This document shows positions 2,923 through 57,449 of a stretch of 64,000 nucleotides of DNA, piece after piece. Position numbers and translations under genes: made by a program. Origin of the DNA: Oopsacas minuta (lineage: Eukaryota; Animalia; Porifera); NCBI GenBank assembly GCA_024704765.1, contig JAKMXF010000326.1:1-64000 (forward strand). The letters run 5' to 3'. Each line of letters begins with the position of its first letter. The first letter of the stretch is position 1. A model generated the notes under the pieces. The model was not told where the DNA came from. It saw nothing but the letters and a program-made list of their open reading frames with translations, and made no database searches.

Positions 2923-3148
2923 TAATTTCTATGCCCCCTTAGACAGTAGTAAAATTCTTAAGTTCACCTGTATGTGCGTATTACAATTGAAGACATAGTC
3001 TTGGCTACTGCATAAATTTATAAAAGCCGGTTCGAGAACAATTTCGAAGAAATCCGAGGTTATCCATGAGGAAAATGGCCTTTGAAATGACAGTCTTTCA
3101 CTGACCTATCTAAGAGTCGTCAAATTGTTTAAGTTTGAGAATGATTAG

Positions 3149-3230
3149 CAGTGGCGTACCGAGTGGGGCCAAAGGGGAAGTCGCCCAGGAGGCACTCTTT
3201 AGGAAACTGCGTCTTGGATATTAAGCCTTA
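3149..3230. mobile_element. Isolated hAT-like MITE left end
   Basis: CAGTGGCGTACCGAGTGGGGCCAAAGGGG... GC-rich terminus typical of hAT non-autonomous elements; no partner end found. Confidence 0.3.
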
Positions 3231-12173: not shown

Positions 12174-14825
12174 TAGAACCTATCGCATATGTCAACTCTT
12201 GCATTCTCTATCTTGAAAAGAGTCGGTTTCCACCTGAGGATTCTAGTTACTGGATGTTAACTGTATGTCCATAATAAATAAAGCTTCTTCTCTATATATT
12301 ATATAAGGCAGGAGTGCCAACTATCCAGGTCAACGAGTGTAAAGTTAGCTGATTATTCGACCATATAAACTTCAATCCAAATTTAACCCACTTCAAATTA
12401 TTAAATTTCAACGAATTGATCTAATTCGATAGAGGAGAGTTAAATATTTTATGTAATGTGATCTTTGTGGAAATCTTTACTATTTATGGGAATTTTTGAT
12501 CAATTGCCTATGTATACGAATTCATTAAAATACATATCCTCAAAGTTAGAATTCGATTCTGAATATTAGTATACAGATTTGTACCATATGATTAGAACGG
12601 TTTAATATTATCAATTCAACGAAATAGGTTTATTGATTCACAGAAAATATTCATACACCCCTTCACCAAAATATATGTATTGAAAATATTTCAATCTCCT
12701 GATTTAGTTTTGTTTGCATTGCAATCTTTTTGAATTTGCGTTTGCTCTCATATTTGATATTGTTCATTGCTCTTCACTATTTTGTCTGCCTACCTAGTAT
12801 AATATTTTCATTGATCGGACGTATTCATGATTACCATTGAATTGTTGGATGCTCGCATTGGATTGTACTCTCTTCGGAAATGCTCTAATTGTTCCAGAAC
12901 CTCATTTGAGTCTCTCATTTCTTTTGGTGATATGTCCATACTAATTTCTACTCTGTTTGCCTGTGTAATTTCAATTCTACAGATCTGTTCGCAAATATGA
13001 TGACATATAGCTTATCCTACGAATTCTGGCAATCCATTGGTTGCCGTTTTGGTAACGTTTACTATATCTATATACAAATATAATTATAATATGAACCGAA
13101 AAATGTTTACGTCGATTTGTACACATATATTTGTTTTGTCTCTAGAATTACAAAGGGATATCAGGCTAATGATATGTGAAATGGTCTCCACTAGTTCATT
13201 CTTTTGAAGTTCTCATTAGCAAGTGGTCCAGTATTCCCAGTTCAATTTGGGGATCGATTGGCAAGAAGGTTGTGTGTTATAATAGAGCTGACAAGAGAAT
13301 ATTGTTTGTAGAATATGGTCAACTGTACGCACATCAGGTACTTTTGGTGTTGTAGAATTAAATATACGCAAATATCATCCAGAATTGCGAACCTATTGAA
13401 TGATCCTAATATATCGTAACAACACGAGCACAAGTGTAAAACAATTTAAGAACTTTACTACCAAACCTTTCCCTAAACTATGTGATAGTTCAGGTTTCGC
13501 TTCACATCATAGTCTCAGTCCCAATAATGTGCCACTGGAAAAATAACTAGCCAGGTTCAGGGTCAAAGAGAAGGATATTGCCTGGATGAACTCAGATTTC
13601 CTAGAAGAAGAAAACCACTTAAAAAGGATTTTCTTAGGAAATATACAAAATAACAATTTATCTACTTTGACGATTAGGAAAGCTCCATTCCGGAAAATCA
13701 ACGGAAATGATATTTTAACCGATGAGGGCTTTGCCACCATTGAGTAAATTCTAAAATCTTTAAAAGAGATCCACTAGTGGCTATAACAGCAGGTTTGGAT
13801 AAGTGGAGACGTACATAAATGAAACATTCGGTTTCAATTATTCCATTAGTCACGAAAGAAGGTAATGATTCGACACTTTGAGAATCAGTCATTAGCCCAC
13901 AGTGGAAATAGTTAAATGGATATCTTCCTCTATGAAGCGTAGAAAACTAATCCATATGCCAACTCCCTGTACCTCTATTCTTAGTATTAAGATTTCGTTT
14001 TTCGATGGTGCAATAAATGATTTAGAGATAAGTAAACAAGACGTTCACACTTCGTAATTACAATTAATTAGAGTAAGGCTGCACATGCTAAAGCAGAGGA
14101 ATTAGAAAAACATTCTTAGTGGTAAATTACTGTCAAATTAGAAACTCTACTCACATATCGAGGACTAGATAATTCTTGATTTTTGAATATCGTCAATTCA
14201 TTTTTCCCATTCAATAAGGTGTCTTCCAAAATATTATCATCACAATTCAATTATCTCTACATTATGTTTCATTAATGTTTGGCTTTCAAGTAAGGGAGGA
14301 AAGAGGCGTAAAGGATCGAAGATCAAAGCGCTAGCTGTCAAGATATGACGCTTAGTTAAGGAGATGATTAATCGAGGCTGCAAACAAAAATGAACTTGGA
14401 GTCATTCAAAATGGAACACGAGTAAACTGATATATTTTAAGATTAGATAATAACCCAAGGTACCTTGTATTTTTGAGCTATAGGAATCTCTTAACACCAC
14501 TGTCATCCGAACGAATTGCAATTCGTAAAATGATCTGGCAATATCAACTGTAATTTTTAATTATACTAAGTTGAAATACTTGTAATAATCCAAATATATC
14601 TTTCACAATCACAATACCACGGAAAAATCAGTCATTATGACCATTACCGCCCATTCTATATCTAGCGAAGGTGCCATAAACTATTCTGGTCCTTCATATA
14701 TTAGCGTACTCTGTAATTAATGGATAATGTGCATTCAACGAGTATTTGTTTCCTCATTATCATTGGTAACCCTTACGATGATCCAACCGTACTTGTTCTG
14801 TTGTTAGTTTGCAATACTTCTTATA

Positions 14826-16129
14826 CAGGGTAGCATACGTTCTTTCCCAACAGATAAAAGGCCATAATTTTAGCAAAACTCAATGAATGACTTAAAATCT
14901 TAACACAATAACATACACATTATTTGGATAATAAATTATCATGCTTTTTCAATATATTCACCTTTTTCTTAATTACAGCCCTAAGTCGTGAAACAACCGC
15001 CTCTATTGCCATTGATGGTTTTCTGGGAGATTTCACTTGAAGCAGGTATTATTGATCGCTTCAGGGCCTCCAAATTTTTCTGGGATTTACAACGAGCCTT
15101 TGTTTGTAATATTGACCAAACTGGGAAGTCTAGAGGGTTAAGGTCCAGACTAGATGGGAGTCATAACTGTTTGGAAATAAAGTCAGGAATTTCGGAGTGA
15201 AGCCAGCTTTGAGTGGTATTTGCTGTATGAGCAGGGGCACTGTCTTGTTGGAACAAAAAGGGTTCATTGTTAAACATCGACTTGCCAAGTTCTTTGACTA
15301 TAGGCTTTAGAGCAAGGTTTTGGTAAGTTTGAGCATATATTTTTACCCCAGTTAGGATGAAAACTATCGGAGTCTGGCCAAGTAAGGATATTCCAGCCCA
15401 AACCATAACATAACATGGTTTTTGTACTCTTTTACATATCTGTACTCCTCAGGGATGGCAGACGCTGTAAAAGACAATATTCTGTCGTTTTGTTGATTAT
15501 AAGCTTCCTCTACTATAAATAATATCTCATCTGAGAACAGGGCGTGATCAAGACCTTGGATAGCGAACCGGTCAATGAGACCTTTGCTTCTCTTCAGCCT
15601 CTTCTCCTTCATTTCCTTTGAAATATAGTGTACTTTACGTTTTGTAAATGAGAATAAATCCATGTCTCTTTTGACAATTCTTTGGAGGGAAGAATGAGGT
15701 ACCTTGAGCTCTGAAGCTATTTTTTCACCGATCGACTGGGATTTCGTCATACACGACCTCTTACGATCTTCCTCACCCCTGTTGTCATTGCAAATGCGGG
15801 ACGACCAGATCTGGGCTTGTCAGAGACGCTGCCAGTATCCTTATACCTATTAATGGTACGGTATATAAACTTTCCCCTCGTTTTAGGAATATTGAGAATC
15901 TTCAAAATTTCACTTTGATCTTTCCCTTTTCGAAATAATTCGACAACTGTCACCCTTTCCGTTTCCATCGAGGAATTTGTCTAGATAAAACTATGAGATG
16001 TTAAGATGAACAGTTTAGAATACTTATAAGACTATATAGAAGCTTGAAAAGCAAAACCAATTTCCTAGCTTTACCATAAAATCTATAGTCATGTATTAAA
16101 GTATGGGACAGAACTTATGGGCCGCCCTG
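14826..16129 (-). mobile_element. Tc1/mariner superfamily, DD37D (maT) element, defective
   Basis: Imperfect TIRs CAGGGTAGCATACGTTCTTTCCCA and CAGGGCGGCCCATAAGTTCTGTCCCA; TA flanks; 1304 bp. Confidence 0.9.
14939..15968 (-). pseudogene. DD37D (maT/Bmmar1-like) transposase, frameshifts and stop
   Basis: HTH with KPRSGRP; LFSDE; FQQDSAPAH followed by exactly 37 residues to the D of LDLNPLDF (one W codon mutated to stop). Confidence 0.88.
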
Positions 16130-16879
16130 TATATAAATTTCCATGAATAATGAAATTGGGTAATTCAGATAGGTGTCTTTCAGTTGCTTATGTTGCTGTG
16201 ATATAAGCATGTAAGGATAACAGTCATTCCCTATCATACATCTATCCACTTGATTTCCTTAAGTCAAACGGTTACGTATGTGTTTCTGTCACATTGTATT
16301 GAGCTCCAAGTGAGTAGAAATTAGACAAAGTTGTATTTCCATTGTTTCGAATATTATTATAAAATTATTGTTGATATTTTTCACTGAAACTGGGCACATT
16401 GATAGATCCAATTTTCAAATCAGGGGGAACTATTTGTGCCAGTTTTTGATTAGATTACTATAAATATATACTTTAAATTCAATTCATCAAATTTTGGCAG
16501 CTAGCTAGGATGTTTACGTGAAGAGAAAAAATTACCAGTATTGTAAGTTTCCAAATTGAACAAATGGGTGAATTTCAATGAACTTATTCCAGAATTTCGT
16601 CAACACGGATTCTTCAAAAAAATTGATATAAGTAGGATTAAATTTTTGATTAGTTTTGGGAACAAATTTCCAACAAGATGATCCCAGAATGTCAGGATCT
16701 ATTTGCTATGGCAACGACTAAGAATGCAGCTCAAAATGACTGTTTTATGCCAAAGTTATATTCAAAGGGACTCTATTATAAGCACGTTAAGATGTATACA
16801 GATGGCACATTATAGTATTTAGTTATACCACATTAGTATATTCTTTCGCTATACCACAGTATACCCACATTATACTTAA

Positions 16880-16910
16880 TATGCCTCAATTATGCCTCAA
16901 TTATGCCTCA
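16880..16910. repeat. Short tandem repeat, 11-bp unit TATGCCTCAAT x ~2.8, within a TATACCAC-rich tract
   Basis: Read directly at 16880-16910; the surrounding 16820-16955 has repeated ataccac(a) motifs resembling a transposon subterminal region. Confidence 0.6.
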
Positions 16911-17540
16911 GATATACCTAGCAAATTTACCACAATTATACCAGAACTATACCATGAGTTAGACTAAATATTTTACCTACTTAAATATTACAGGTATGCA
17001 TGCGTCTACTTCAAAATAGTATTGTCAGGTTATCAGTTACATCACACTACACTGAATACTGTTATACAGTTACGTGACGAAACTTAGCGAGCCTATTTCC
17101 GCTCAAATTTCATTAAATAATTCTCATGGCATGCGACTATTCAGTATATCTAGTATAATTGAAATCAAATTTAAGCTGTTCGGAACTGATCACTTGTTTA
17201 GAATATAGTACTTTTTGGAAATACAGTACACACTCGTTAAACCGAAAAGGAGATCCAAATAAATTTCAAATGAAAATTATACGAAATGTCAGTTAAAGAT
17301 GAATAGCCATTAATGGAATTAGACCTGAAATTGTCTGTTGTACTACTCTGAGTATGTTAATCACATTCGATGATTTTCATGATCTTGGTCTAGACCTTTG
17401 AGGGTTCAGAATAGTGAGGTGGTTTTTCCCCATAGGATTTTCAATGGTATTGTACTGTTCTGATTAACGAGGGTGTACTCTACCTGATTTTTTTTAATCT
17501 CAGTAAATTAGCTACCAACTAAATATTCTTTGAGTTAATT

Positions 17541-18685
17541 ATGGCTTCACAATCTACAATAATTGATGGGGAGATGAATGAAGTTGAACTCTCGAGGCAA
17601 ACTAATCCTAAGCGAATACCTCGATGTGATTATATGAAAGCCTTCCAAATAGGAACCAAGGTATCACACATGGTAACCTATATCGGTAGTGTTCTCTATT
17701 CAGAAGACTCATTATTTTTTTCTTCACCTTCACCTCGATTGTATATAATTGACTGTCTTGTGAATAGAAACGAAACATATTTGCCTGAAACTCATGATTT
17801 TATGTATAGTTTAGAGGATGATTGGGTGACTCCACCTTCACTTCCTACGTCAAAATTTCTGAAAACAAATGCTGGGAACACGAATGCGACGAATTAATTT
17901 GGGAAGCTTGGGATTACTCACAATGGCGTTTGCACCATGATTAATGCCAATTCTACCCAAACAAGAAAGGTTATTGACCATCTACAAAACCAATGTCCTT
18001 TCAAAGAAAATAGAAAGAACGCTACCCACTGCAAATCTCTAGTATGAAGCAGTCGGTAATTAATAGCCCCCACCCAGAATTATAGAAAAGCGCTACTAAG
18101 TAACTCTTATAGTCAAGGAGTCTCTTCAATTGAATTTGATAGATACATCAGTATATGTAAAACTGTTCCAACTCTTCAACCGCCTAATACGTTGGGCGGG
18201 TTCCCTTCTAGCCCTCCAACTGATCCGCAAGTGATAATTATCGAAGATTTAGCCGGAAAATTCGCCGTTCAGCTGTCATTACCAGAAGATGGCTTCGAGT
18301 TGAATATAGCTAAACAAATTTAACTACAATTTCTCCGCACTGTCCGTTACCATACCCTCATAGACTTCGAAATGTGATTATTCCTCGTTTATACCAGAGG
18401 GCCAAGTTAGAAATTGAAGATTCTATAAAATTTGGAAATCTGCACAAATTGCAGTTGATACATGACTTGGCCCATCCCGGAGAAGTGAACCTACGCCTTA
18501 CTTTATGTCCATTCTCTGATCCAGCATTGTTCCACGATAGTGAATAAATCGAAGTTCGCAATATTCTCTATGATTACATGTTCGCACCAAGCGAACCACG
18601 AGACCATGAATATTATGGCATTCACTTTTACAATGGACAAAGGCAATATCAGAAAGACTTAAAACACCAGTTGTTAGTTTGATTT
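17541..18685 (+). pseudogene. Decayed ORF of unknown family (~380 codons)
   Basis: One frame runs 17541-~18378 with only scattered single stops, then one shift and ~100 more codons with one stop; protein-like composition; no motif recognised. Confidence 0.4.
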
Positions 18686-19453
18686 ATGATGGAGAGGCAT
18701 CTTTGTTGAAAGGGGCCAGATATGCTCGAAGTTTATGCAATTCATAACTCAAACAGAGTCCTCTATTTATCATGTAGTGTTCTGCACATCTTTTAAATTT
18801 ATTATGCCATAATATCATTACCGTCTTGGGTGCAAAAGTGAAGAAATTGTGGTCTGCATAGAAGATGGCCACTATGACTGATGTCAGATGAAATTCGGCT
18901 TATGAGCCTCTTGACAGTATCACTGCTAATCGTCACTATATCGATGAATATTCTAGGCGAAAGAAATTAGCTCCTTTAATAAGTGGCATTATCCTCAGTA
19001 CTGAGTTTGGGTACGGGGTTAGAAAGTTGTTGGAGGTGATTCGCCCAGTTTGTATTGCTCAATATATAATGCAGAGCGATTCAATTAAGTTTGGAGAAAA
19101 TATCGGCATTATAGTAGGTGTTTCACTTGCTATTGGCCATAGTTCTATTACATAAGTGAATAAATTTCGTGTCATTAGTAAATGTGAACTCGCTTAGATT
19201 TATTGATGAGGGAAATCCAAATTTAGAAAAAATTGGACAATGTTTACGTGCAACAGGATATTGTTGCCATCCTGGTTATCGAGGAATGATACTTTCCTCT
19301 GTTTTGGAATGTCAAAAGATTGCCGAAAATGGCCTAAAGATGTTGCTTGCAAGAAGGCAAAGAGAAGGCCTGAAAGTATCTACAGATGATGTCGCTCACT
19401 GTATTCAACTTGTGTTAGACTTCATAAGTCTGCAAGCGATGTTTGGACTATGA
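18685..19453 (+). pseudogene. hAT transposase internal fragment
   Basis: YDGEASLLKG (second Asp region), CSAHLLNLLCHNI (CxxH), VR*NSAY (degraded TRWNS), LLEVIRPVCIAQYIMQSDS, CHPGYRG. Confidence 0.7.
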
Positions 19454-19479
19454 GCTTTGGTAGCGTCGGAAGAAATCAC

Positions 19480-19522
19480 TAAGGCATACGCCCGTGTGTG
19501 CCCTGGTGTGGCTACGTCACTG
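19480..19522. mobile_element. hAT-type right terminus adjacent to the hAT fragment
   Basis: ...GCCCTGGTGTGGCTACGTCACTG; reverse complement CAGTGACGTAGCC. Partner end not found. Confidence 0.5.
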
Positions 19523-21758
19523 CCTAAAATGCCTTGGCAAATGCTTTGTGAGCGTTAATGAATGAATGTATTACTTATACTAATTGTACAGGGTTGTAAA
19601 GTGGATCATTGTGTAAACTTATATGCTAAGAAAGCGATAAGATGAGGTCATTTTATCATAGAAATAGTTTGTATAGACTGAGTGAGCGAATAGGAAAACC
19701 AATTGGGCCAAGACATATATAACTTCCTAGTAATTGTAGTACACATCGCATGTCTAACCTCACCACATACAAATTATTAGAATTATACAGAACATGCGAA
19801 AATCTAACTCATTAGGAAATTTTCGAAATCAATATTGAGTTTTACATACAACTTCCAACTTTATGGAGGGGAAAAAGTACAAAGGGGTACAATATTCGCA
19901 CAGTTCTGCCAACTAAAATATGGTACTGAACTCATTAAATCTATTTCAAAGAAGGGGTATTATCCAATTGAGTAGCTAGTGTCATTGTATTGGTGTAGTC
20001 AAGATTAGCAATCTCAAAATCCATTACATTGGATTTTCATTATGAGATAAAATTTCAAGACATTAAGACAAGAAAAAAATACGACTTGGCTGGGTCGTTG
20101 TAAAGCTTAACTTTGTTGAAATTATGATTGTTTGTCAATATATTTTCAATACCTAGGAAAAATAGAGAAGAAATCTGTGTTGGTTGAGTATAATGCAGTC
20201 CTTACCATATTAGATACTGAACAAAATCGCTCAATAGTCCCTGTGGTATTAGGAAGAGTTAAAAAATACGATAGAGACCGACAACAGTGGAATAGGCAGT
20301 AGGTATCATGTTTGTAGTGCAGGAGCTTTTAAATAAGGTATAAATAACTCCAAATATCGTGAGGTAAGTGTCAAGATAGTGTTAGAAATTTTACCAAGTT
20401 ATCTTGATCGGACCAGAATGGCCTGTATCAGTTCGGTGAGTCCGAAAATTGGATTTAAATGTCAGGACCGCCACATTGATTAGACCAATCGTTCTGTCGC
20501 GATGGCATAATTGGTCTGAACCAGTCACAGAAATTTCCCAACTACTGCATGCCTGTTAGAAGCACATACACATGTTATGTGAATTTAGAAAAGGTTAAAC
20601 ACACATGGATTCAATTCACCACTCTACAATGTAACTTTTGAAAAACATTTATCATCTAGATCAGTATCATATAAGGTGTCACATCTATGGGTCAGGCCAT
20701 TCAATAGGTCTGGAAAGGTCGAAGATTTTAAACATGCGGTCTGAAGCTGTCCGGACGGTTCCGAATAACCCAATGGTGGTCTCGTTCGTTTGGTAAAATC
20801 AGAGCGCTGCATGTCTGATTCATAGTTTTTCAATCATCTGGCTAACCATGTGTGGGTCAGGTTTAATATAAACATGGGCAGCGCATGCAGAATGGACATC
20901 TAGCTGCTGTTTGAAGTACCCTCAATATTCTGCAATTTAATCCTAACATACGAAACCATTAACATAAACTAATTTCTAATGATTGGTATACCCGCCTTAA
21001 ATAGGGGAATCTATCTAATGTAGAAATGAAAATTGAAAATTGGATTGCAACACACAATACTCGATAATAAACCTAAACCTCTATTACTAAATTTTAGCCC
21101 TAAAAATACTAGGTTTGGATACCAATCCCGAATATGAATATATAGATCAAACTGTTAAAAATTTGATGCTGAGCGAGTATGAGCATAGTAAATAGATCTG
21201 AAATCAACTAAAATAGATAGACTATATTACAACTAGGGCGATTCCTATTGGGTACCAAATTTTAAACACCGATATTTTCAACCTCTAGAGGTCTGATTGT
21301 TTATAGACATTTTCTCTGTAGTAAATTTTGGATAATAAATAAATTATACTGTCAAAATTCACACAATTACGGAAAAAATTGAGCAAATTTGTTTTTTACT
21401 GATCACTCCAACGGAATCTAAAATATATTAAAACTTCATATATCACCTCCAACCCGTGAACTTCTGTATGTTGGAATATGCCTAGTTCTTATACCTCTGA
21501 GATTTCACATTTAAATAGCTTTGTTAAATGAAGATCTGCAAATATTCGTAATTGGTCACAAGTAGCTGCACTGAAATAATTCTTTAGAGCATTGATCATA
21601 ATTTCAAGGATAAAATACTACACTTTTGCTATTATCAATGGTACAAAAAATTATTTTAAGGTTATCTGTCGAGACAGTGGATTTATTAGGACTGGCCAAC
21701 AGATTTTGATACCCTTAAATTGGATAATTATCTTGGTTCAGAGACTATAAACTATGGG

Positions 21759-43019: not shown

Positions 43020-43219
43020 CACTAAAGCAATGGGACTGGTCTATTTTTCAGGACAGGAATTGGAAAAACGAGTTAGGGAGTATTATACTGAGTATATCTT
43101 TCAGGAACAGTGCACTTTTGCTGAATAAATATAATAAATACTCGTATCAAAGTTCTAGAATTTAGATAAACTTCAAGAAATATAGGATACATATAAAAAT
43201 ATATATTCCAAAGGCAAAC

Positions 43220-44821
43220 CTTTGCGATAAGAGATCTGAGTAATGAGTTAGTTGTACAATTCAATTCTGAAGTTTGTTGCATCGAATATATCGAATCAAA
43301 TAGGTCATCACGAGAAATATCAACTTCTTCATGTTTCTTGTCCCAATCAACTAAATGTAATTGCCCAGCTTCATCAGATTTTATATCAGCAACTAGTGAA
43401 GAACGGAGATCAGCTAATTGATAAATTACACTAGAAGGACGGGGAGGCAACCTCAGATAAAACACACCTAATGAGACTTCCAAGTGAAATAAAACATCAT
43501 CTTCAATCCACTCTAATAGACCACTATTATCCAACGTTGGGAAGTAGTGAGCGAGAGGGTTTATTCGGCTGAGGAGGATATTATATACTGGAGAAAGCAT
43601 ATGCAGAGAGAATTGTCGTAATCGTGAAGAATGAGTGTTATCGATAAAAGAGTCCCCACGAAAAACAGTCACAGGGGAATCAATTACTGACTGAAAATCA
43701 AAAATTAATGCAGATGTATTAATTGGGCCAGAAAAAGCGATAGAGCTGGAAATAAATCGCAAAACTACAATAAAGCTGCTAAAATGCGAATCTGTAATCA
43801 GAGCTAAATAATAGTAATCAAGATTTCCGATATGCCAAATCATAGGGTTGGAAATGAAGAAAATGATTTCAAAATCAATCAGAGATAGAAGGTTGATCTT
43901 AGAGGATTTGAGTTTCGATAAAATATTGATAGAGAATTGTGTTTCAAAATTACAATGGAAAACATCAGTGTCCAGTCTGTACAAGAATTTTCTAGAAAAT
44001 CCTCCGAAAAGAGACGGAAAAATAGAATTAAATGCATGCAACTTTGGATGTATTAATCGTATTCCAAAAAAATTGAACACACAAAGGTTAGATATGGGTT
44101 CAAAGAGTGGAAAAACAGACCGATTTATTAGTGAAAACGGAAGTAGAGAAAAGATATTATCAAAAGGTTGATGTACAGTGCAGTTAACAAAGAATATCTG
44201 TTTGATATATTGTTGTAATTCAAGGGCCAAAGGTGACAAATTTTGATTAGTATTGATCCAAACTAGTCGAATTGAATGAGATAAAAGGAATTTAGTCAAA
44301 TCGGGAGTTAGCACATGTTTGAAGAACAAACTCGACAAATTTTTTCCTTCAAACGAGACAAGCTTGGTTGTAAAAAAATATTCGAAATCCTTTCGAGCTG
44401 CAGGAAATCTACCTAAGATAAAGATATATTTTCGAACATATATATTACTATACCTCACAGTAACTGGTGAAAAAATCTCTGCAGGATCCCATGTTTGAGA
44501 ATAGAGAGATTGTATGAGTCCATTCCATAAATCCCGGCTATTAACAGTTGTTGAAACATCATTGTCAGTAATAAAGCTACACATATGAGAAATGGAATTT
44601 TTCCAGGTTGTTGATGAAAATGGCAAAAAAGAGCCATTTGTAAAACTCAAAAATGATAAAAGGTTCATGTTCCATTCGATATCTGAAAACATAGAAAGTG
44701 AAAGGTTAGATATAACGAAAAATTGTAAAAGTAAGGTTAAGATCAATCGCTGAATGTGAAAAAGATTAGAAGTCAATAATTCGGGAAAGACAAGAAATAA
44801 CAACCTCCATTTATTAGCCAT
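43220..44821 (-). CDS. Large intact exon (534 codons) of an unidentified host gene
   Basis: Uninterrupted frame in ~30% GC DNA; acceptor ttgtatttctag| immediately upstream of 44821 and candidate donor AAG|gtttgc at 43219; Leu/Phe/Ser-rich; no domain recognised. Confidence 0.75.
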
Positions 44822-45025: not shown

Positions 45026-47510
45026 TAGTGATGTTGAACGAATATCATTTTAAAATAATCGGTTATCGAATTGTTAATTCGCAAAGTAACGGATTGATCG
45101 GTTATAATCGGTCAAACTCAATTATCATTATATTCTGCCTTTAACTGCTAGTACTTTCCTGTATCTTAATTTATCAAATGAAATCAAATTAGATAAAATA
45201 ATGAGTTAATGACTAATAATGAAGAAATCCTAAAATCTAATAATTTATTATTACTTTATCTCTTGCTTCTTGAAATATGACTTTAAGATCATTAAGCTAT
45301 CAACCGAGTTCTCACTCAACCGTGATCTCAACTTCTTCACAAAAAGTCCTGCTGCTGAGAAAGCACGTCTTGCCTCAACGCTGTCGGAGGAATTGTATTC
45401 AGTACTTCCTCTATAGAAGAAATATTTTTGGATTTGTCTCCAGTGGCTTCAATAAGGCCATTTCCTATATCAGAGATAGAAATCCAATATCTTCTTTCGG
45501 GGTTCTTACATAAATTGTAGAATTTTGTATTGCTCTTTTTAATTGGTCAGCAAGTAATATCGGAGAGCTACGTATTTCAACGTCTTCAATGTTTCCGAAG
45601 TCTCCTGAGAATTTAAAATTACACTATCGAATTGTTCAGTTCCATGCTGTGAATACAATTGTGAAAGGATCATTTTCATTGTCTTTTGCACTACTTTTCT
45701 TTTAATACACGGATCCTCCCTTATCGAATCAGGATTCAATAAATATCTCATAACATTGATAAGATTAGACTGCCGCCTCCCGTTAAATCTTTGTCTTAGG
45801 TTCTGCAATAATTGTATGGAGAACTCTGAACAAACCATTTCAAGTTTCTGGAACATAAAATAGATTATCCCTTCTGCATTGAGTAAATTTGCGTCACGCT
45901 GGCATAGAGCAGATATCCTCATTTCGATGGGTTTTAAACAACTGCAAAAGTTTTCCAACACTTGCCAATCAAGTTCACAAACTTCCATGTTTAAATTGAT
46001 GTCGATCATTGCTTTGCATAGTGCTTTTCTTACAGTTAACAATCGATTAATCATGCTAATTAAGCTATTCCACCTAGTTTTGCAATCCATGACTAGATTT
46101 GAAGTTTTTCCTAAATCTTCCTTTATGCACGACTGAAGTACTTCATTTTTTAATGGGGACTTCCTAAATATACGAACGATATTTCGAAACTTAACGATAA
46201 CAGTTTCTCTATTTATTTTCGAAGGCGGGATAAACATGTCTTCATCAATTTCACCGTCATCTTCATCTGAGAAAATTGATTCACCTTCAGTATCTTCTGC
46301 ACCACAAAGGCCATCATTATATGAGTCAGAGATAGTCGACTGAATTTGAGATGTGCCAATTGGCTCTTCGTCCGTTCCTTCATCATAAATAGGAATCCTA
46401 TTCTTGGAGTATAATACTGCAACTACTGCTAAATGTACCCCGTGAGCCAAACAAAGTTGCTGATGAATACCACTTAGTCTTCCCATCTTCACCATGACAG
46501 GGGCTCCATCACAGATGATGCTAACAATATGCTTCTGCAACTCAATATTGAATTCAATCCATATCCTTTCCAAAAGCTCAAGAACCTTCTCAGCTGGCAT
46601 CTTTCCATAAATACGCTTCATTCCAATGTTCCAAAAGTTATTGATGCTATGTATATTGACATTCATATACCGCTTATTTTGGATAGAAGTATATTCGTCC
46701 AAGTACACGCTCATCCATTTTCCATTAGCAAGTAAAAACTGTAACTGAGAAGTGACCACTCCCTTAACATGATTTGCATTCTTGAAACTGTAGAATGGTC
46801 TGGAATTGGGGTGAAAGCATTCTCTTGTAACGAAGAACGGATAAATTTACTTTGGCTGATTATCAGATAATCGAAACAATCCTCAGCAGCTAACCTAGCA
46901 ATTACCTCATCCAAACCTTGTTTTTTGGAAAATAATGGTAACAAACTTTGAGTACTATGTTTCTTCGAAGGGGGTTCGTTGTCAGAAATGTGATTCAGGC
47001 CCAATTGGATATTATGTATCAAAAGATGATTTCTTAACCCAGTAGTTGTACTGCCTTTACAACTTAGATTCTTCTTACAAATAAGGCATTTGGCTTCTTC
47101 CCCATATTTCTCGAAATGTTTCCATACCTCAGACCTCTTAGCCATAATACCATACAGTATTGTAAGTATAGAAGTAACGATTTATAGAAAAGCTAGAATA
47201 TTCAAAATTATGCTGTAACAAATACGTTTACAGATAATTATACATATAAATATACGTATCGCCGTATGCCTATAAACTACTATATCTAGCAATTAAGTCT
47301 CTAGCCGTTAAAACATAATTCAAGAATACATAGAATGACAATTGTGTGATTTTTTTAATAGAAATTCCAATAGAAACTTTATTGTTGACTAAAAGGTGAA
47401 ATTTTGAAAATAGCCGATTAATCGAAGTAGAATAATCGGTTATCGATAATAAGTAAAAATTCAATAATCGATTAAATAATCGAATATTTACTAATCGGTT
47501 ACCATCCCTA
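45026..47510 (-). mobile_element. hAT (Ac/hobo-like) DNA transposon, full-length, defective
   Basis: Termini TAGTGATG and CATCCCTA; perfect 8-bp TSD ATACGTAC (45018-45025, 47511-47518); AATCG-type subterminal repeats. Confidence 0.93.
45251..47145 (-). pseudogene. BED-finger hAT transposase, frameshifted, probable 3' intron
   Basis: BED finger VWKHF...CLIC...STTTGLRNHL; LDEYTS; CDGAPVM; CLAHGVHL; KTRWNSL; C-terminal IPPT/VEARRAFSAAGLFVKKLRSRL dimerisation domain. Confidence 0.9.
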
Positions 47511-49968: not shown

Positions 49969-50224
49969 CAGTACATATTAATCTTATACTAATTTGAATG
50001 TCGACACATTAGGTGCTTTAGGGTTGATGAAAAGCATCGAGATAAACTCTTGCGCCCTACATTACAACTGTATTAAAGTGATGCATATAAGCTAGTATAA
50101 ATTAGTGGTGGGCGAGGTAAGTCTTTAACCCCTTGCGGGCCCAAAATCTATCAGATCTTGCGACCACAATAACACTTATGTAAAATGTTGATCTTACTAC
50201 AAAACAGTATAAAATTGCATATAT

Positions 50225-50287
50225 TAAAAAGTACTGTGCGCATGTCCATTAGGTACTGTGCGCATGTCCGTTAAGTACTGTGCGCAT
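50225..50287 (+). repeat. Left TIR: TAAAAA + 22-bp unit GTACTGTGCGCATGTCCATTAG x ~2.6
   Basis: Units start at 50231, 50253 and 50275; each contains TGCGCAT(G). Confidence 0.95.
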
Positions 50288-50407
50288 GCATGTAAAATAT
50301 TTATTCAATTTGTTGTATGCATATATAATGTTACTACGGTTGTATGCATATATATTGTGAATGCAGGTCAGAAAAAGTAATATCACGAATTGTACGTATT
50401 CCGATAT

Positions 50408-50590
50408 CAATAGAGTCTCGTTAATACGAACAAGGGTTAAGCCGTAACTCTGGATAAGGACTACAATTTTGTCCCCTTTATCAGTTCCCTTCGATGCCTT
50501 TTCAATGTAATTAGTTCGGATAATACGTACTCCGGATAAGGAGTACGTATTTTGGCAGTCCCTTGTGTACGTAATAACGAGAGTCTACTA
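50408..50590. mobile_element. pogo/Tigger-type MITE nested in the KDZ element
   Basis: Imperfect ~29-bp TIRs CAATAGAGTCTCGTTAATACGAACAAGGG and CCCTTGTGTACGTAATAACGAGAGTCTACTA; internal perfect 12-bp-stem palindrome at 50522-50551. Confidence 0.7.
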
Positions 50591-50672
50591 TAGTATTAGT
50601 ACTCTGGTATAATTCTCTGACTGTCTCATACAATAAGAAATAATCAGTTTCATCCTTCTCACCGGTTTAAAC

Positions 50673-53600
50673 ATGGCCGAAAATATCTCTACCTCAACTT
50701 TTGAAATTAAACACCCACATCCAAGGAAACGAAGAATAGTTGAGGAGAAACTTGACATTACTGCAACAACCCTCAACATTGGAGGAATTGAAATTTCGAA
50801 GACAGATGTTTCGCCAGTAGATATCACAATATCAGAAGAGCAGTTTGAAATTGTACCAAGTAAGTTACGTATTGAAAAGGCCCATTTCCATGGAATGCTA
50901 TACTATTTAACACGACATTACTCAATATACTTTTTTAGGCCATCCCAAGAAAGAAGTATACACTGAAATCTTTTCACAAGAAGAGCTAACTATTCCAGTA
51001 CTAGATCAATATGTACATCTGCTTGCTGATAAACAGAAGGCTTGGCGTTTGCAAGATTGCCTGTAGTATTCATGTCAGATTTTGAAGAAATCAATGGTAT
51101 GACACCTATATGTAACTACAGTGACCCTCGCTAATCCGAACCTCGTCAATCAGAACAGAGCCTAAATGTCATACAAGTATACGAGCCTTTGGTTCGTCGC
51201 TTTGCGAAGAAATCGCCGCATTGCGCCTCGGGATATTCAACGGGCAAACAACAATTGAGATTAAATAATATAGATTTAATTCAACTGCGAACAAAGCCAC
51301 CAAAGAATATAGCCTAGTTAGGCGAGGTGGTGGCTAAGTTAGTTACCATGTATTCAATTTTATCAAACGCTGCTTGGCAGCCTTGTAATCATTTGCACAC
51401 AACATTCGAAAAATGCACTCCCAGATCCTATAGTGTTTCAATTCATGTTTTCATTTTCTAGGTGAAGTAATATTGACCAAGAAAAAAGTTTTGATCGAAA
51501 CTTGTCTGATGAAATGCTTATCTTATCATACGAATTCTTGCACACATTATCAAGCATATGAATTGTGTTTGGAATTCCAAACCTTAAACCATTCCGAATC
51601 CAAATCCCATGCTGGCAGTACTTACTACACATTAGGTGCAAATACAATTTTTTTGCTGAAGAATGGCTATCATTGCCTATATAGGAAAGAAATGAAGTGG
51701 TATTGCGACAATTGTAGTAGTATGTGTAAAGAAAAGTTAATCCTACAGGCAATCATGGCAGAATACAATGATCAGTTACTCATTCCTCAGAAACCTCTTG
51801 ATTATTCTACCATATCTAAACAATATCCTCCTTTTAAACTTAGTATGAACCAGGCCATTATATATAATGAACAGTTAAGACGAGGATTATTTCTACCCCC
51901 AAATCTTGAACCAGATATTTTGCATTGTGAGCAAGGACATAAATATGTTGCCAAAAGTCTAGTCGTAGCAAAAAAGGGAATCATTATATACACAGAAAAT
52001 GATGTCCTCGATTTAAAAGAACATACAGGTATGTTATTTAATTATATACTACATAGTATATATTCTTTATTTGTCCTCTAATATTCAAGCTAGCTTATTT
52101 ACTCAATTTTTAGTGTATACATCTACTTGTGAAGGAAGTTGTAAATGCACCTCTGTGTTTGAAGGAAATAAATATTTACTGCTGAATGTCAATAATCGCT
52201 ATTTCATCCACTATGGAGTATTATTTGAAACAGCGAGTTTATGACGATGTCTCGGAATACACTACATGGATACATGAGGTATGTATTTAGATACATTTTG
52301 TCCGTTGGTTATGTACTCAATCGAATACCAAAATAACAAAAGAAATACATATCGATTGAAAGTGATCTATTACGGTCGGTAGTCATAATTATATAAACAA
52401 TTAAATCAAATTCATTTTAGAAAGTTGATCTGGTTACTCTTTATTATGTTTAGAGCAAAGAATAATAAATTTGAGAGAATGGGAAGGGAACTCACCTTCA
52501 GTTATCATATACAACGGCATGGATGGAATGGGTACTTACGTATGTTAGACATTAACTATAAGACAAACTATATTTGCCCATTATGCCAAGAAGCTCCAGA
52601 ATTCTTAATTATGGATGGCATAACAATGGGGACAATTAAGGAACTCCCGAATACAGTTGAAGAATACCTGGAAGATCAGAGGTTATCGTTTGTCCCATTA
52701 TCAAACAGGGTATTGGTATCTGATCTACAAACCAGAAAATTGATCAAAAGTTACTATTCATTTGGATTGGGTGAAAGCGAGTTTCATACCATGGTCAATT
52801 CTTTAGAGTTTGAAGCAATTACAGAGTACATTATTTACGCTAACAATGTAATTGATGAGGTCAATGTGATTAATCCGACTTATCCAAATGCTAAAGCTAT
52901 TATGGAACTATTCTCCAGATCAGAATGAATTTCTGGCGTTTTTCCTGTATCTATCCTTAGCGAGTGCGAGAAGAAAGCTATTGCTACTCTCTCTTGAATT
53001 AACCAAATTGATGTATGTCTGCTTTATGAGATTTTTGAAAAAATGCATACTCTAAGGCTATTCCTTAGCTCGTTTGGTGAAGTTCAAGAACAATGTACTA
53101 CTAGTACAGGATTTACCCTTCATCCTATTCTTGCTGGTGTTCTAAGGGCTATTCTATCCAAGATTGAATTACTCAATAACTATAGAGAAGGACGGAAGAC
53201 AGTAGAGGCTTCCCCATCAAATGACACTCTAGATAAATACTTTCCAGCAATAACAAAACGTTACAGGTATTATATAATTGTACTCAACTATTCATTCAAT
53301 ATAATGCATCTGTTGAAAACATAATATAAATCCTATTGTGCAAACTTTCAAATATATTGAACCCTTAGATTACCGATGTATGAAGATGATAACGAAGAGA
53401 AATATAAAGGATGTACAAAAATATATCCGAAACATCAAAGGTTATCACCAGGACTGTTAGTTGTTGTCTGTAGACATAAAGTGTGCTATGGATTTCAAAT
53501 ACTTCGTAGTAAAGAATCTACAACTACAGTATTTACCTACTCCTGACGTTGTTCATAAAGCCCCCTCGTATTATAATATACGACAATGCTTGCAATCTAC

Positions 53601-54021
53601 ACAATACATGTATCATCAGGTTAGAATTAATATACAAAATACGTACAGCCGTATACCATCTCTAAGATTTTTAATTTAATCTATGTAATGCTCTTAAAGT
53701 GCTAAGCATACGTACTTACTAGCATTAGATAATAATAACTTCTATATTATCATTAGGGAACCCAAACTTTTCAAAGATACTACATTTTTGGTTGATCGCT
53801 TTCACTGGAAGAATCATTGCTGCAATCCAGCTTATTCTTTGAAGTCAGTGAAGAGTCATGATTTCATGAGAATAAACTCTCAAGTTTGCGAACAGGTGTT
53901 CTCTACATTAAGGAGAATAACCACCCAAGTATCTTTCATGCGGATCGAAAACATATTCTACAATGTACGATATTTCTTATACGGTTTGAATGAACAAGAA
54001 TTACGAAAACTAAAGTGCTAG
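50673..54021 (+). pseudogene. KDZ / HMGXB3-like transposase with Cys-cluster (CxC) N-terminus, ~8 exons, inactivated
   Basis: Spliced product contains CPLCQEAPEFLIMDGITMG (D), GCTKIYPKHQRLSPGLLVVVCRHKVCYGF, IIYDNACNLH (D), REPKLF...FLVDRFHWKNHCC, INSQVCEQVF (E). GT-AG introns start at ~50860, 51097, 52029, 52279, 53267 and 53620. Frameshifts near 51050, 52230 and 53540; TGA at 52926 and 52995. Confidence 0.85.
51119..51160. mobile_element. pogo/Tigger-like MITE end inside a transposase intron
   Basis: TA-CAGTGACCCTCGCTAATCCGAACCTCG; partner end not clear. Confidence 0.4.
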
Positions 54022-54116
54022 TAGCTAATACACTATTCATGATTCATGAATAATGAATAAATTATATTAAATTAACAAGTATACTTTATATTCTCTTTAC
54101 TAAACTCTTTTTGCTG

Positions 54117-55997
54117 TTACAACGAGGAAACCTTTTGTGTAATATCCTGTAGGCCAACACATGGTTTGTGAAACCATTGGGTATACACTTGACAATTCAC
54201 CATATTCTTAAAAGCGAACTCGGGTAGACGACAAATACACCAAAGTTCAATTGTATATTCCAACTTCTTATTGACCTTTATCCGTGAACAGAGTCTTTCA
54301 GAAATTGTAGGCAGGGGTGATAATTTTTCAGAAATAATGAAATTACGCAGGTGACGTCTCATATTGCCCTGGTTCCATCTCAATATACTTGGTTCTAAAC
54401 CATTCGCTAACGCGATACTAACTACAATAGCAAAGACACCACAATCTGAAATCCCTCTTTGTTGTTGTAGCTCTTGAACTGTAACTTTTAAATCTTCAGT
54501 CTCGCTTCGATAAAGCAGTGGAAGTTGGATGTCCAGCTCTTCACTTAGACCCCGGATTAATAACGAATCATATACTGATATATTTCCTTCATCGTCAATC
54601 CTAGACACTTTCCAGTGTAGTTTACCATCGTGGTGTATTTGAAAACTATTTAGTGCTGCTCTAACAAATTGGCGATTCTAATAAGATAAAAGACATACAA
54701 TTTGAAATGCCAATTATTTCAGGACGATAAAATAAGCAAAATAATAGATTTACCTTAGATAAAATAGTATCCTGGAATCCTTCAATGTCTGGATAATTAT
54801 TCTTTATCAAAACCTAAACATAATTTATTAAGTAACCTAGTAAAAGTTGTTTAGTTGTTTGTCGAAGCGAAGTGCGAACGTAGGTTATAAATGGTATTGA
54901 AATGTAATATAATTAAATCATAGAGAGAGCTTACCTCAAAGGCGTTGATAGTCACATCACTAAGAAAGGTTTTGTCATTCGATAGCTCTTTAAGACAGTC
55001 ATCCCTTACTTTTTCGTCTAAAATTCTCACAGATGTTACATTTAATGGAATTAAAGCCTTTGCTGCTGATAATCCTGCCATTGAAACTACAGATGTATCC
55101 AAAAGAGACTGAGGGGAAGTAAAGGGTGAGTGATCGGGTTGCTGTTCTGATATGGTATTTGGTGTTGAATGGATCGATTCACCAAGATATTGTGGAGACG
55201 ATGGGCATTTCTCTGGAGAAGTATTTAGAGATATTTCCACATTGGAATCCAGAGAGGAAGGTGAATGATCAGTTGGATTATATACATTCTCGTCATCCAA
55301 GTCTGAATCTAAACAATCTTCTTTTGATAAATGTATAGGTGACCTGTCTCTAAAACTATCAGATAGATCTGGAGAAAAGTATTCGCGCATCGATTTAATA
55401 ACGAAAGGCAAAGTAGTTCTGCCCATATTCTTTGATTGCTTGAGAAATGGAATTTCCTTGGGCCAAAATGTTGGCCGGTTTTCACTTTTCCCCCAAAAAT
55501 TACGCGGTTTTCCTACAATTAAAATATGATATATGTATTACCAAATTAATACTTACTTAAGTATTACACACCAATTTGTTTCAACAGCAGTACATACCCT
55601 GTACCCACGAAATAACAACAAATGGTGGCTTCCAAAACTAAGGGTAAGAAAACAAGAAACTTACTGTTCATCTTTTGAGTTCCCCATGATAAAATCTTTC
55701 TTAACGCCTGGACATTATGTGTGTGTGGATCTTGTTTCATCAGGTTCATCATTTCATCTTCTTTATAATCATCTCGAACAACTGATGAGTCTCCGACCAC
55801 AGAGCGTTCAAATGTAAGCTTCGCCAAATTTGTTCTTTCGTTTCAGCAACATGCTGCCGGTAAGTATCGCTTCCCAGAACTGATAATTGTCCCCTCCAGG
55901 AGTAGACAACCCCTACAGATTCTCCTGTTACCTTTATAAACGTTGCAATCGCTTTAGCTAAATGCTCCCTAGCGTTGCCCTTGGTAATACGAGGCAT
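54117..55997 (-). CDS. Passenger gene (~510 aa, 4 exons, one frameshift): NRF1/EWG-like DNA-binding domain + Ser/Asp-rich linker + Ulp1/SENP-like (C48) cysteine protease + degenerate PHD finger
   Basis: Exons 55997-55665, 55512-54935, 54813-54754 and 54677-54117 have canonical GT-AG junctions that keep frame; 1-nt frameshift near 55820. Motifs: LRKIL...WGKSENRPTFWPKEIPF; FLSDVTINAF; QIHHDGKLHW; VYDS; QQQRGISDCGVFA; WCICRLP...MVNC..YTQWFHKPC. Confidence 0.82.
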
Positions 55998-56142
55998 TTC
56001 AGCTAATTTGTACAAATTATAGTAAGAAAGTATTCAGCTAGACTGGTAGACTAATTACTAGAGTGGAATAACTGGGATCTGAAAAGCAGTCTAATATAAC
56101 TTAATCTGTATAATATACGCCTACTATGGTACATGAATCCTT

Positions 56143-56205
56143 ATGCGCACAGTACTTAATGGACATGCGCACAGTACCTAATGGACATGCGCACAGTACT
56201 TTTTA
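56143..56205 (-). repeat. Right TIR of the KDZ element (inverted copy of 50225-50287)
   Basis: ATGCGCACAGTACTTAATGGACATGCGCACAGTACCTAATGGACATGCGCACAGTACTTTTTA. Confidence 0.95.
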
Positions 56206-57449
56206 GTACCTCTAAAATTGTATAAAATGTGAAATACTACCAGAACAAGCCCAAATTCATAATCACTGAGATTTGGCAGTCCATCTCTTCAATAAGAAGA
56301 TTGAAATTAGGGGTTAGTGATGTGAGTGAGCAGCGTACCTCATTTTCTAGATTTCGTCAGTTAATCGGAATCTTGTATCTGATTTTACTTTCATTGACGA
56401 AAATATTATGCGTGGAACAAAAAATAGACAGAATTTTAGCAGCTAGTAATCGAATGTAAAATTGAGCTACATTTCTACAGTCAAGAGTTGATTCAGTTGG
56501 GCATGATTGAAGATCAATAAGGTCAATCCATAATCTCGCAAAATCCAACCGGAATATTCGAGCCATATGCTCCACCTTCGACAAAGGAAATTATCTGGAT
56601 TGTGGAGAAAAGTTTAATAACCAGGAATATGTACAAAATACTTAACTAATTGGAAAAATTCTGTTTTAGCAGATTTATCCATTCCAGATATCGATCCATG
56701 TTAGGAATTGATTCTGCTTCTTCATCTACAGACAATCTTAGTTGATTAGGTAAAATGACGCAATTCCATCTGACTTAATTGCTATAAAAACAAATTAATC
56801 TTAATCATTAACACTTTCACTATAATATAGGCTGTCAATAATGTTTGATGTTTCCTGGTAATCCATGGTTAAGATTGTTCAAGTGGTGTGCTATATCAGT
56901 TAGAAAAGCGACATCACGAACCCAATCAATATCACGCAGATATTGGTCGTAAATGTAAACATATTTTGAAACGAAGAAATCGATTAGATGTAGCAACAGA
57001 GCAATAAATCAGTTTAAAACTACAACTCGGTTAACCCATCGAACGTCACTCAAGCATATTTTGCAGTCTATTTTATCTATATTTCAGCTCATTGACATAC
57101 ATTTTAAGTCCCCGATCTTATAATGCAAATAATTGCGTGTTGAACAGTCGACAAATTCGCATAGTATATCTTTCTATATTACATTCTTAATAATTTCCAG
57201 ACCCGCCAAAAGGCGCCCATACTTGACAGTGAGTATATGTGGCACACAATTCGGATGAATTGTATGTTTAGAAAAATTTCATAATAACATCTTATTATTA
57301 CTGTATTTCGAATTCATTAGTATCATTTTATGAAGTATCCAATGCAGAATTGAATTCAGTATACGTATTGTTATTCAAGTTTTTCAATGTATGGCTGAAT
57401 ATTATAAATCACTCAAAAATTTAGAACTCAATTATTCTTGAACCATATT

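Follow-up and report, generated by a model that had tools for sequence, protein, structure and literature searches.

A KDZ-type DNA transposon of 5,995 bp occupies positions 50218-56212 of the window, the 64,000-nucleotide stretch of Oopsacas minuta contig JAKMXF010000326.1 that we analysed. It carries two convergent genes, one for a KDZ/Zisupton-type transposase and one for an accessory protein in which a predicted NRF1-type DNA-binding domain (DBD) is joined to an Ulp1-type protease and a PHD finger. We consider it probable that the window holds a dead copy of a two-gene transposon whose accessory protein would bind the element's own ends.

The window element was compared with seven further loci (L001, L002, L003, L004, L005, L008 and L012), so that eight loci from six to seven diverged families were examined. 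A perfect 8-bp direct repeat, TAAAATTG, directly abuts both termini (Table 1), and these duplicates bracket the element and thus define its limits. A repeat search of the window returned inverted-repeat arms at 50222-50287 and 56143-56208 (66 nt, 97% complementary), and Tandem Repeats Finder resolved each arm into ~2.7 tandem copies of the 22-bp unit AAGTACTGTGCGCATGTCCATT. The core of this unit occurs six times in the 64 kb, always at the two ends of the element, with 0.05 occurrences expected. The element begins with 5'-CATATATTAAAAAGTAC and finishes with GTACTTTTTAGTACCTC-3'. Terminal inverted repeats (TIRs) homologous to those of the window were found in L001, L002, L004, L008 and L012, which brings the loci with TIRs to six. 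The terminus TATTAAAAAGTAC is common to the window element, L001, L004 and L008, and L002 and L012 carry one-base variants. Perfect 8-bp target-site duplications (TSDs), each of a different sequence, flank five copies (window, TAAAATTG; L001, ACCATATG; L002, CCATAATC; L004, CTTTCTTG; L012, CAAAATTG); a search of the L008 flanks found none. The L003 copy lacks one end, and L005 is truncated and CpG-decayed. An 8-bp TSD and TIRs are characteristic features of Zisupton (PMC12730594).

The outermost 7 nt are unlike at the two ends, reading CATATAT at one and GAGGTAY at the other (50218-50224 and 56206-56212 in the window). The window, L001, L004 and L012 have CATATAT at the transposase end, and L002 and L008 have it at the accessory-gene end. 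This looks as if the interior of the element had been flipped through recombination between the inverted repeat arrays. At L002 (15945-15990), the element adjoins a short hairpin (ccataatccgacat...atgtcggattatgg) and the TSD sequence recurs inverted 40 nt downstream; this element may have inserted into another small palindromic repeat.

The accessory gene has four exons and ~510 codons. From N- to C-terminus, its predicted product has an NRF1-type module for dimerisation and DNA binding, a linker rich in Ser and Pro, a C48 (Ulp1) protease and a PHD finger. The start of exon 2 matches Pfam Nrf1_DNA-bind (PF10491) at the same profile positions (144-178) in four families, above the 23.5-bit cut-off in L005 (24.4 bits) and sub-threshold in L001 (20.0), the window (15.7) and L008 (14.7), and the match spans only ~35-42 of the 213 profile positions. 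A profile of the exon 1-2 junction, made from an alignment headed by the spliced NCBI model P0019, was searched against the PDB and retrieved the NRF1 chains 8k3d_A (E 9.9e-6) and 8k4l_A (E 1.2e-5), with nothing else in that search below E 1; the matched part covers helix alpha5 and linker2. The AF2 model of the junction segment (pLDDT 81.5, pTM 0.72) has NRF1 chains as its top three PDB fold matches (probability 1.00, 0.99 and 0.98; TM 0.63-0.65; E 0.055-0.23), and the next fold match follows at probability 0.06. Identity to NRF1 over the modelled DBD is only ~18%. Together, the profile matches and the predicted fold indicate that the accessory N-terminus is an NRF1-type DBD.

Upstream of this domain, exon 1 by itself matches no sequence in PDB or Pfam beyond its own family, NRF1 included. 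Its model (pLDDT 70) shows a helix-strand-strand-helix arrangement whose best fold matches are the MADS domains of SRF, MCM1 and SEP3, at a non-significant E of 0.28-0.8; the NRF1 chain itself is absent from the top 50 fold matches. The dimerisation domain of NRF1 is located before the DBD, and its closest structural homolog is the MADS domain of SRF (PMC10810270). The tentative accessory layout of a MADS-like module followed by a DBD would agree with that of NRF1.

The NRF1 dimer binds GCGCATGCGC, and each DBD reads a TGCGC half-site via R206, K221, N242 and R244, a DNA-binding mode that the structure paper called novel (PMC10810270). In the accessory proteins, the R206 equivalent (Arg of TLRK) is invariant in 15/15 family sequences and the K221 equivalent, the Lys of GKP, is mostly retained. 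The N242 equivalent is retained in L004, L005 and L008 and is Lys in the window, L001 and L012. The R244 equivalent is variable among families, and neither N242 nor R244 is conserved in the family of the window.

The recognition sequence of NRF1 was found in the ends of these elements. The 22-bp unit of the window contains the 8-mer TGCGCATG, all five occurrences of which in the 64 kb are in the TIRs (starts 50237, 50259 and 50281 on the plus strand at the left; 56164 and 56186 on the minus strand at the right), with 0.68 expected from base composition; one degenerate copy is also present at the right. The complete 10-bp GCGCATGCGC is part of the 22-bp units of three other families. In L004 (20 kb), 12/12 occurrences fall within the TIR arrays, and the single occurrence in L008 is likewise within a TIR. 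L012, an extra family that was retrieved afterwards, blind, as a test, has 14/14 inside its TIRs, three in one and 11 in the other, at exact 22-bp spacing, and shows the same gene pair and a perfect TSD as well. By an estimate from base composition, the 10-mer would occur by chance ~0.002 times per 20 kb. L005 carries GTGCATGCAC, the expected CpG-deamination product of GCGCATGCGC. That a transposon with a gene for a predicted NRF1-type DBD has end repeats built round an NRF1 site is a striking coincidence, and it is chiefly because of these two features that we propose the mechanism below.

In L005 (8381-8415), a terminus-like CATATATTAAAAAGT is followed by GTGCATGCAC and then by unrelated tandem repeats of the GGGAATCCCCAT type; this locus is apparently an old copy that has decayed and been truncated. 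A lone end of the L001 type (GAGGTATTAAAAAGTACAGTGGAC...GACATGTCC units), interrupted by a hairpin-forming insert, was observed 1.3 kb from the L012 element (L012:8310-8440). This shows that families with unlike cores (GGACATGTCC and GCGCATGCGC) coexist in assembly ERZ25071281.

The C-terminal half of the accessory protein was assigned from the relatives. Pfam Peptidase_C48 matches an L001 fragment at 25.2 bits (cut-off 20.7) and the window at 13.9 bits, and a family profile matches PDB chain 6dg4, an Ulp1-like SUMO protease, at E 0.0027. L001, L002, L005 and the window have all four catalytic residues, namely His (LHW), Asp (YDS), and Gln with Cys (QQQRG..DCG; QQQRGISDCG in the window); in L004, Asn replaces the catalytic Asp. 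At the family level, the accessory gene is thus predicted to encode an Ulp1/SENP-type C48 cysteine protease. Pfam PHD is matched above its cut-off of 24 bits in L001 (30.9), L002 (31.0) and L005 (29.2), and at 16.7 bits in the window. The PHD family profile retrieved PHF2 at E 1e-10, then PHF8, BPTF, DIDO1, CFP1, SPP1, TAF3 and ING proteins, whose PHD fingers we take to be H3K4me3 readers. Judged by these matches, the accessory finger is of the H3K4me3-reader type, and the Cys4-His-Cys3 pattern is found in the relatives.

A search for related loci with a single protein as query returned only one distant C48-PHD relative, L011, without a KDZ transposase. In this metagenome locus (JGI contig Ga0126336_10008732, 1671-2210), the C48-PHD part has 28-34% identity, and neither a KDZ transposase nor an NRF1-like part is present on the 6.7-kb contig. 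The protease-PHD module therefore exists outside this element family too.

The transposase gene comprises seven exons and ~802 codons with frameshifts allowed for. Three lines of evidence gave the splice sites of both genes: GT-AG borders that keep the frame, agreement between copies, and two spliced NCBI gene models of O. minuta relatives (P0039 for transposase junctions and P0019 for the junction of accessory exons 1 and 2). A Pfam scan of the raw open reading frame (ORF) pieces of the window gave almost nothing; domain calls came from more intact relatives and from family profiles. Pfam KDZ (PF18758) matches exons 6 and 7 of L001 in collinear segments, at profile positions 76-135 (14.6 bits) and 144-201 (19.0 bits); these single-exon scores, like that of the last window exon (15.6 bits), are each below the 26.6-bit cut-off. 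An exhaustive HMMER search with an exon-5 profile returned only 228 proteins among 1.84 billion representatives, and full-length relatives from this search pass the KDZ cut-off (P0081, 27.9 bits; P0084, 27.7 bits; P0088, 35.0 bits). CxC4 (PF18717) is matched by P0102 at 29.4 bits, above the cut-off, and by P0088 at 24.9 bits, and in full-length relatives the exon-5 region sits between the CxC4 and KDZ domains. Exons 3 and 4 contain Cys-rich motifs; no Pfam CxC match was obtained on the window or L001 pieces. Considering the collinear Pfam hits, the relatives above the cut-off and the 8-bp TSD with TIRs, we assign the first gene to the KDZ/Zisupton-type transposases; the family passes the Pfam threshold, and the decayed window copy by itself stays below it. 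Multi-exon transposase genes are typical of Zisupton (PMC9297572).

An earlier sequence-only reading of this DNA had described inverted repeats enclosing a KDZ transposase gene and an NRF1-like/Ulp1/PHD gene, with stop codons 95 bp apart. Both identifications and the spacing of the stops agree with our results, and the inverted ends are indeed there, with a TSD; the limits given then (50225-56205) have to be moved slightly outwards. The two genes were also said to contain introns. This holds for the GT-AG introns, two of which are corroborated by P0039 and P0019, but several of the ORF breaks are frameshifts and stops of a decayed copy.

With a single transposase exon as query, two ORF fragments were found on long ENA contigs (L001 and L002). 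Both loci are collinear with the entire window element, TIRs included, at 68-80% nucleotide identity in coding blocks. A profile of accessory exon 1 retrieved 17 relatives, two of which are NCBI "hypothetical proteins" of the glass sponge O. minuta, and the L003 copy (O. minuta, GCA_024704765.1) is 95-98% identical to the window element. The element family is at home in sponge-type genomes, the nearest copy (97%) being in O. minuta. The tail-to-tail pair, i.e., accessory blocks P1, P2, C48 and PHD together with transposase exons, was present in 8/8 loci, with only the last two transposase exons retained in L005 and with accessory-protein identity falling to ~40% across loci. No homolog of the second gene was found near four more distant KDZ transposase genes, two of them intronless on short contigs (L006 and L007) and two of them long multi-exon genes from two NCBI animal assemblies (L009 and L010). 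The second gene therefore marks a sub-clade and not all KDZ elements.

Selection on the two genes was compared by Nei-Gojobori estimates of dN/dS (the ratio of non-synonymous to synonymous divergence) for L001 versus the window, L002 and L003. Values were 0.05-0.23 for transposase exons, 0.12-0.24 for the NRF1-like exon 1, 0.11-0.17 for C48, 0.10-0.13 for the end of C48 with the PHD finger, and 0.33-0.41 for exon 2 (head of the DBD) and the linker; these figures are rough, as dS is near saturation and tblastn-derived alignments favour conserved columns, but their direction is clear. Both genes are under purifying selection. Protein identities of the two genes are nearly equal within pairs (0.68/0.68, 0.65/0.64, 0.58/0.58 and 0.45/0.44), and their maximum-likelihood trees show no supported conflict. 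Equal divergence, compatible trees and low dN/dS together indicate that the second gene has been in the element since the families split and that selection has retained it no less strongly than the transposase gene. Its product is thus a conserved accessory protein and not a passive passenger: the sequence-only reading was right about a separate second gene, but its label "passenger" undersells one as constrained as the transposase.

The L008 element, from O. minuta, is flanked by gene fragments with SAM and Piwi domains (827-2738 and 15302-20522), which lie within a long inverted duplication (2373-3711 versus 16331-17670, 94% identity).

The window copy itself is dead and broken in both genes, so that the self-contained system envisaged by the sequence-only reading does not describe it. 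It carries four frameshifts of 1 nt each, a deletion of 14 nt and two stop codons, and its PHD finger is broken. All frameshifts are private with respect to L003, namely 1-nt deletions at ~51061, ~52229 and ~53535 in the transposase gene and at ~55814 in accessory exon 1. Also private are the 14-nt deletion at ~54123, through which the PHD finger loses its last Cys pair and the stop at 54117 arises, and a Cys-to-Tyr change within the finger. The two TGA stops of transposase exon 5, by contrast, are common to the window and L003. Given that both stops are shared, the common ancestor of the two copies was probably already defective (non-autonomous) and mobilised in trans.

Table 1 Features of the KDZ-type element in the window, with positions, strand and remarks
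Feature	Position	Strand	Remarks
Left target-site duplication TAAAATTG	50210-50217	.	Identical 8-mer next to each terminus
Left TIR	50218-50288	+	Terminus CATATATTAAAAAGTAC, then ~2.7 copies of the 22-bp repeat (50229-50288)
Transposase exon 1	50673-50859	+	ATG at 50673; donor GTAAGT at 50860; homologous N-terminus in L001, L002 and L003
Transposase exon 2	50939-51096	+	Private 1-nt deletion at ~51061 shifts the frame
Transposase exon 3, Cys-rich region	51462-52028	+	Junction to exon 4 agrees with spliced NCBI model P0039
Transposase exon 4, CEGSCKC cluster	52114-52278	+	Private 1-nt deletion at ~52229 shifts the frame
Transposase exon 5, CPxC...DG motif	52454-53266	+	In-frame TGA at 52926-52928 and ~52998-53000; exon profile retrieves KDZ proteins
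Transposase exon 6, predicted KDZ core (...IIYDNACNL...)	53369-53619	+	Private 1-nt deletion at ~53535; L001 equivalent matches Pfam KDZ positions 76-135
Transposase exon 7, predicted KDZ core (VDRFHWKNH...)	53757-54021	+	Stop codon 54019-54021; Pfam KDZ 15.6 bits, profile positions 145-200
Spacer between convergent stop codons, 95 bp	54022-54116	.	
Accessory exon 4, predicted C48 catalytic core, then PHD finger	54117-54677	-	Stop codon 54117-54119
Accessory exon 3, 20 codons within C48	54754-54813	-	GT-AG borders and frame; homologous block in L001
Accessory exon 2	54935-55512	-	NRF1-type motif GKPRNFWGKSENRPTFWPKEIPF, Ser/Pro-rich linker, start of C48 (FLSDVTINAFE)
Accessory exon 1	55665-55997	-	ATG 55997-55995; predicted helix-strand-strand-helix module and first DNA-binding helix TLRKILSW; junction to exon 2 as in P0019
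Right TIR	56143-56212	-	~2.7 copies of the 22-bp repeat (56143-56201), then terminus ...GTACTTTTTAGTACCTC
Right target-site duplication TAAAATTG	56213-56220	.	Identical to the left 8-mer

In the mechanism that we propose, the KDZ transposase would cut and paste the element and in doing so produce the 8-bp target duplications, and dimers of the accessory protein would coat the phased subterminal repeat arrays. This coating may mark the ends for the transposase, or help it to find or assemble them; in addition or instead, the accessory protein may regulate the two promoters, each just inside a TIR. Once bound, it would carry its predicted C48 (Ulp1-type) SUMO protease and H3K4me3-reader-type PHD finger to the element. 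SUMO conjugation drives heterochromatic transposon silencing and modulates DNA repair. Through these roles of SUMO, an end-tethered deSUMOylase could act on silencing or repair factors at the element and so oppose silencing or adjust repair. CpG methylation blocks the binding of NRF1; if this applies to the accessory protein, the host would shut the system down by methylating the ends. For the Ulp1 and OTU domains of transposons, the Ginger authors proposed a function connected with repair (PMC2836005). We infer from these elements a supporting role of the accessory gene in transposition, as the sequence-only reading had.

Several observations weigh against this proposal. Sequence similarity to NRF1 is limited to ~42 residues, and the MADS-like view of exon 1 comes from a pLDDT-70 model with a non-significant Foldseek E (0.28). 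The L001 unit carries a palindromic variant, GGACATGTCC, without a GCGC core, and no link was found between this core change and changes at the NRF1 base-contacting residues. A candidate co-variation of residues 242/244 with the repeat core (Asn/basic with GCGC, Lys/Ser with GTCC) was rejected, since L012 has Lys/Ser yet perfect GCGCATGCGC arrays. Considering that the TIRs are homologous across families, the motif in the ends counts as one evolutionary observation and not as several independent ones. Finally, every copy examined at the eight loci has some lesion, and no intact autonomous copy was seen among them. The repeats could also be bound by other proteins, either the host's own NRF1 or the transposase itself through its Cys-rich region.

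If host NRF1 is the reader, the GCGCATGCGC arrays would be promoter or enhancer elements, and the NRF1-like protein of the element would act as a transcriptional regulator or competitor (auto-regulation) and not as a transposition cofactor. Each TIR does lie just upstream of one of the genes, the left one ending 385 bp before the transposase ATG and the right one 146 bp before the accessory ATG, and the motif is the consensus of human NRF1, which works at promoters (PMC10810270). However, arrays that reach 17 phased 22-bp units and sit right at the termini resemble subterminal sites of a transposase or cofactor more than promoters, and the element encodes an NRF1-type DBD of its own that is under purifying selection. 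We therefore regard this promoter reading as unlikely. A promoter role and an end-binding role are not exclusive, and TnpA of En/Spm performs both. Alternatively, the CxC region of the transposase would read the 22-bp repeats, and the accessory DBD and PHD finger would steer integration or activity to CpG-rich, H3K4me3-marked promoters of the host. CxC clusters of KDZ transposases have been proposed as DNA or chromatin binders (PMC12062965, citing Iyer 2014), relatives match Pfam CxC4, and the accessory PHD finger is closest to H3K4me3 readers. Against such targeting, the five TSDs (TAAAATTG, ACCATATG, CCATAATC, CTTTCTTG and CAAAATTG) are AT-rich and no GCGC motif was found in the flanks inspected; moreover, if the ends are not the target of the accessory protein, the exact match to the NRF1 consensus becomes a coincidence of ~1e-6 per 22-bp unit, as estimated from base composition. 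This makes the division of labour between CxC region and accessory protein quite improbable.

DNA transposons capture host genes, and Ulp1 domains have been captured repeatedly (PMC2836005), so the second gene might be a hitch-hiking host gene fragment, or the inverted repeats might be unrelated miniature inverted-repeat transposable elements (MITEs) that flank two genes. The sequence-only reading had itself named independent MITEs, and a failure of the two genes to co-occur elsewhere, as outcomes that would overturn it. Both alternatives are already contradicted by the data and we give them almost no credence: the pair is present at all eight loci, in six to seven families and down to ~40% protein identity; the genes show equal divergence, compatible trees and dN/dS of 0.1-0.4; and TSDs directly abut the termini in five copies, which identifies the inverted repeats as the element's own ends. 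A further idea goes beyond these readings. The NRF1/EWG/P3A2 module may share ancestry with an end-binding protein of KDZ transposons (NRF1 domesticated, or the reverse), and within the transposon it would respond to CpG methylation, loading a deSUMOylase onto ends that are unmethylated and so keeping the element clear of SUMO-dependent silencing. We offer this as speculation, with little expectation that it is correct.

Other mobile elements were observed in and around these copies. The KDZ transposase gene of the O. minuta copy L003 contains a nested Tc1/mariner insertion (13536-14577; DDE_3 and HTH_Tnp_Tc3_2), and that of L004 a nested MULE transposase ORF (15119-16294). Elsewhere in the window, three consecutive ORFs at 7370-10100 on the plus strand (345, 204 and 255 aa) have a THAP domain in the first (46 bits) and a TNP-like RNase H N-terminal domain in the second (40 bits); by these matches they look like a P-element/THAP9-like transposase gene, i.e., another DNA transposon in the window. 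Two long minus-strand ORFs at 43073-44821 and 45539-46759 (582 and 406 aa) have no Pfam family and no sequence relative in PDB, and an exact look-up of the 582-aa product in the assembly collection returned no record.

To place the element among known systems, we compared it with Zisupton and other KDZ elements, with two-protein transposons, with transposons that carry Ulp1-type proteases, and with cellular NRF1 proteins. TET/JBP genes occur as extra genes on fungal KDZ elements, and fish Zisupton is said to carry a SUMO-protease (Ulp) domain; our literature search for Zisupton together with protease or SUMO found no account of a Zisupton protease domain. With Zisupton/KDZ elements (Kojima 2025, PMC12730594), the element shares a KDZ-type transposase that is preceded by a candidate Cys cluster and encoded in several exons, as well as TIRs and 8-bp TSDs. 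In contrast to them, its predicted protease belongs to a second gene, convergent with that of the transposase, which joins it to an NRF1-type module and a PHD finger, and its TIRs are arrays of 22-bp units that bear the consensus site of that module. Already known are the KDZ superfamily with its 8-bp TSD, the carriage of extra genes by KDZ elements, and the occurrence of Ulp1(+PHD) modules on DNA transposons (PMC12730594, PMC2836005).

A functional analogy exists with PIF/Harbinger (transposase plus a Myb/SANT protein) and En/Spm-CACTA (TnpD plus TnpA), in which a second element-encoded DNA-binding protein has sites in subterminal repeats. The TnpA sites of En/Spm are located in such repeats, and Harbinger too encodes two proteins (the latter in PMC12730594). 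There is no homology to either system: both the transposase superfamily and the DNA-binding fold are different, and the accessory protein described here adds a predicted protease and a predicted histone reader.

Ulp1-type proteases are also carried by CACTA and Zisupton elements, and we know of no mechanism shown for these transposon-borne proteases. On Mutator, Ginger and other DNA transposons they have been noticed since at least 2006, according to references in PMC2836005. Ginger1-9_HM and Mutator elements of hydra and lancelet have a PHD finger behind an Ulp1 C48 domain (Bao, Kapitonov and Jurka 2010, PMC2836005), which is a precedent for this module on animal DNA transposons. There, however, Ulp1(+PHD) is fused to the transposase itself, with no end-matched, sequence-specific DBD attached.

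With NRF1/EWG/P3A2 proteins (8K4L, 8K3D; PMC10810270), the accessory protein shares the predicted DBD, made up of helix alpha5 with its base-contacting Arg, the GKP...WGK...P.WWP.D.P linker and helix alpha6. The part before this DBD is tentatively predicted to resemble a MADS domain, and the ends of the element contain GCGCATGCGC, the NRF1 recognition sequence. The context differs: here the DBD belongs to a transposon protein that also has a predicted protease and a PHD finger, and not to a cellular activator. In the literature searched, we found no description of a KDZ clade in which a separate gene with this order of domains lies convergent to the transposase gene, in line with what the sequence-only reading had supposed; Repbase and Dfam were outside that search and may have catalogued it before. 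Nor did the same literature describe a link between an NRF1-type DBD and transposon ends.

Compared with these systems, the element offers an Ulp1-type protease fused to a DBD type of solved structure, whose known 10-bp target is arrayed at a 22-bp phase in the element's own ends. This would turn the vague idea of an involvement of the ubiquitin/SUMO pathway into the concrete and testable one of a protease delivered to transposon ends. It would also extend the two-protein logic of transposition known from Harbinger and CACTA to the KDZ superfamily. In addition, that a transposon of an early-branching animal encodes a predicted NRF1-type domain bears on the origin of this transcription-factor family.

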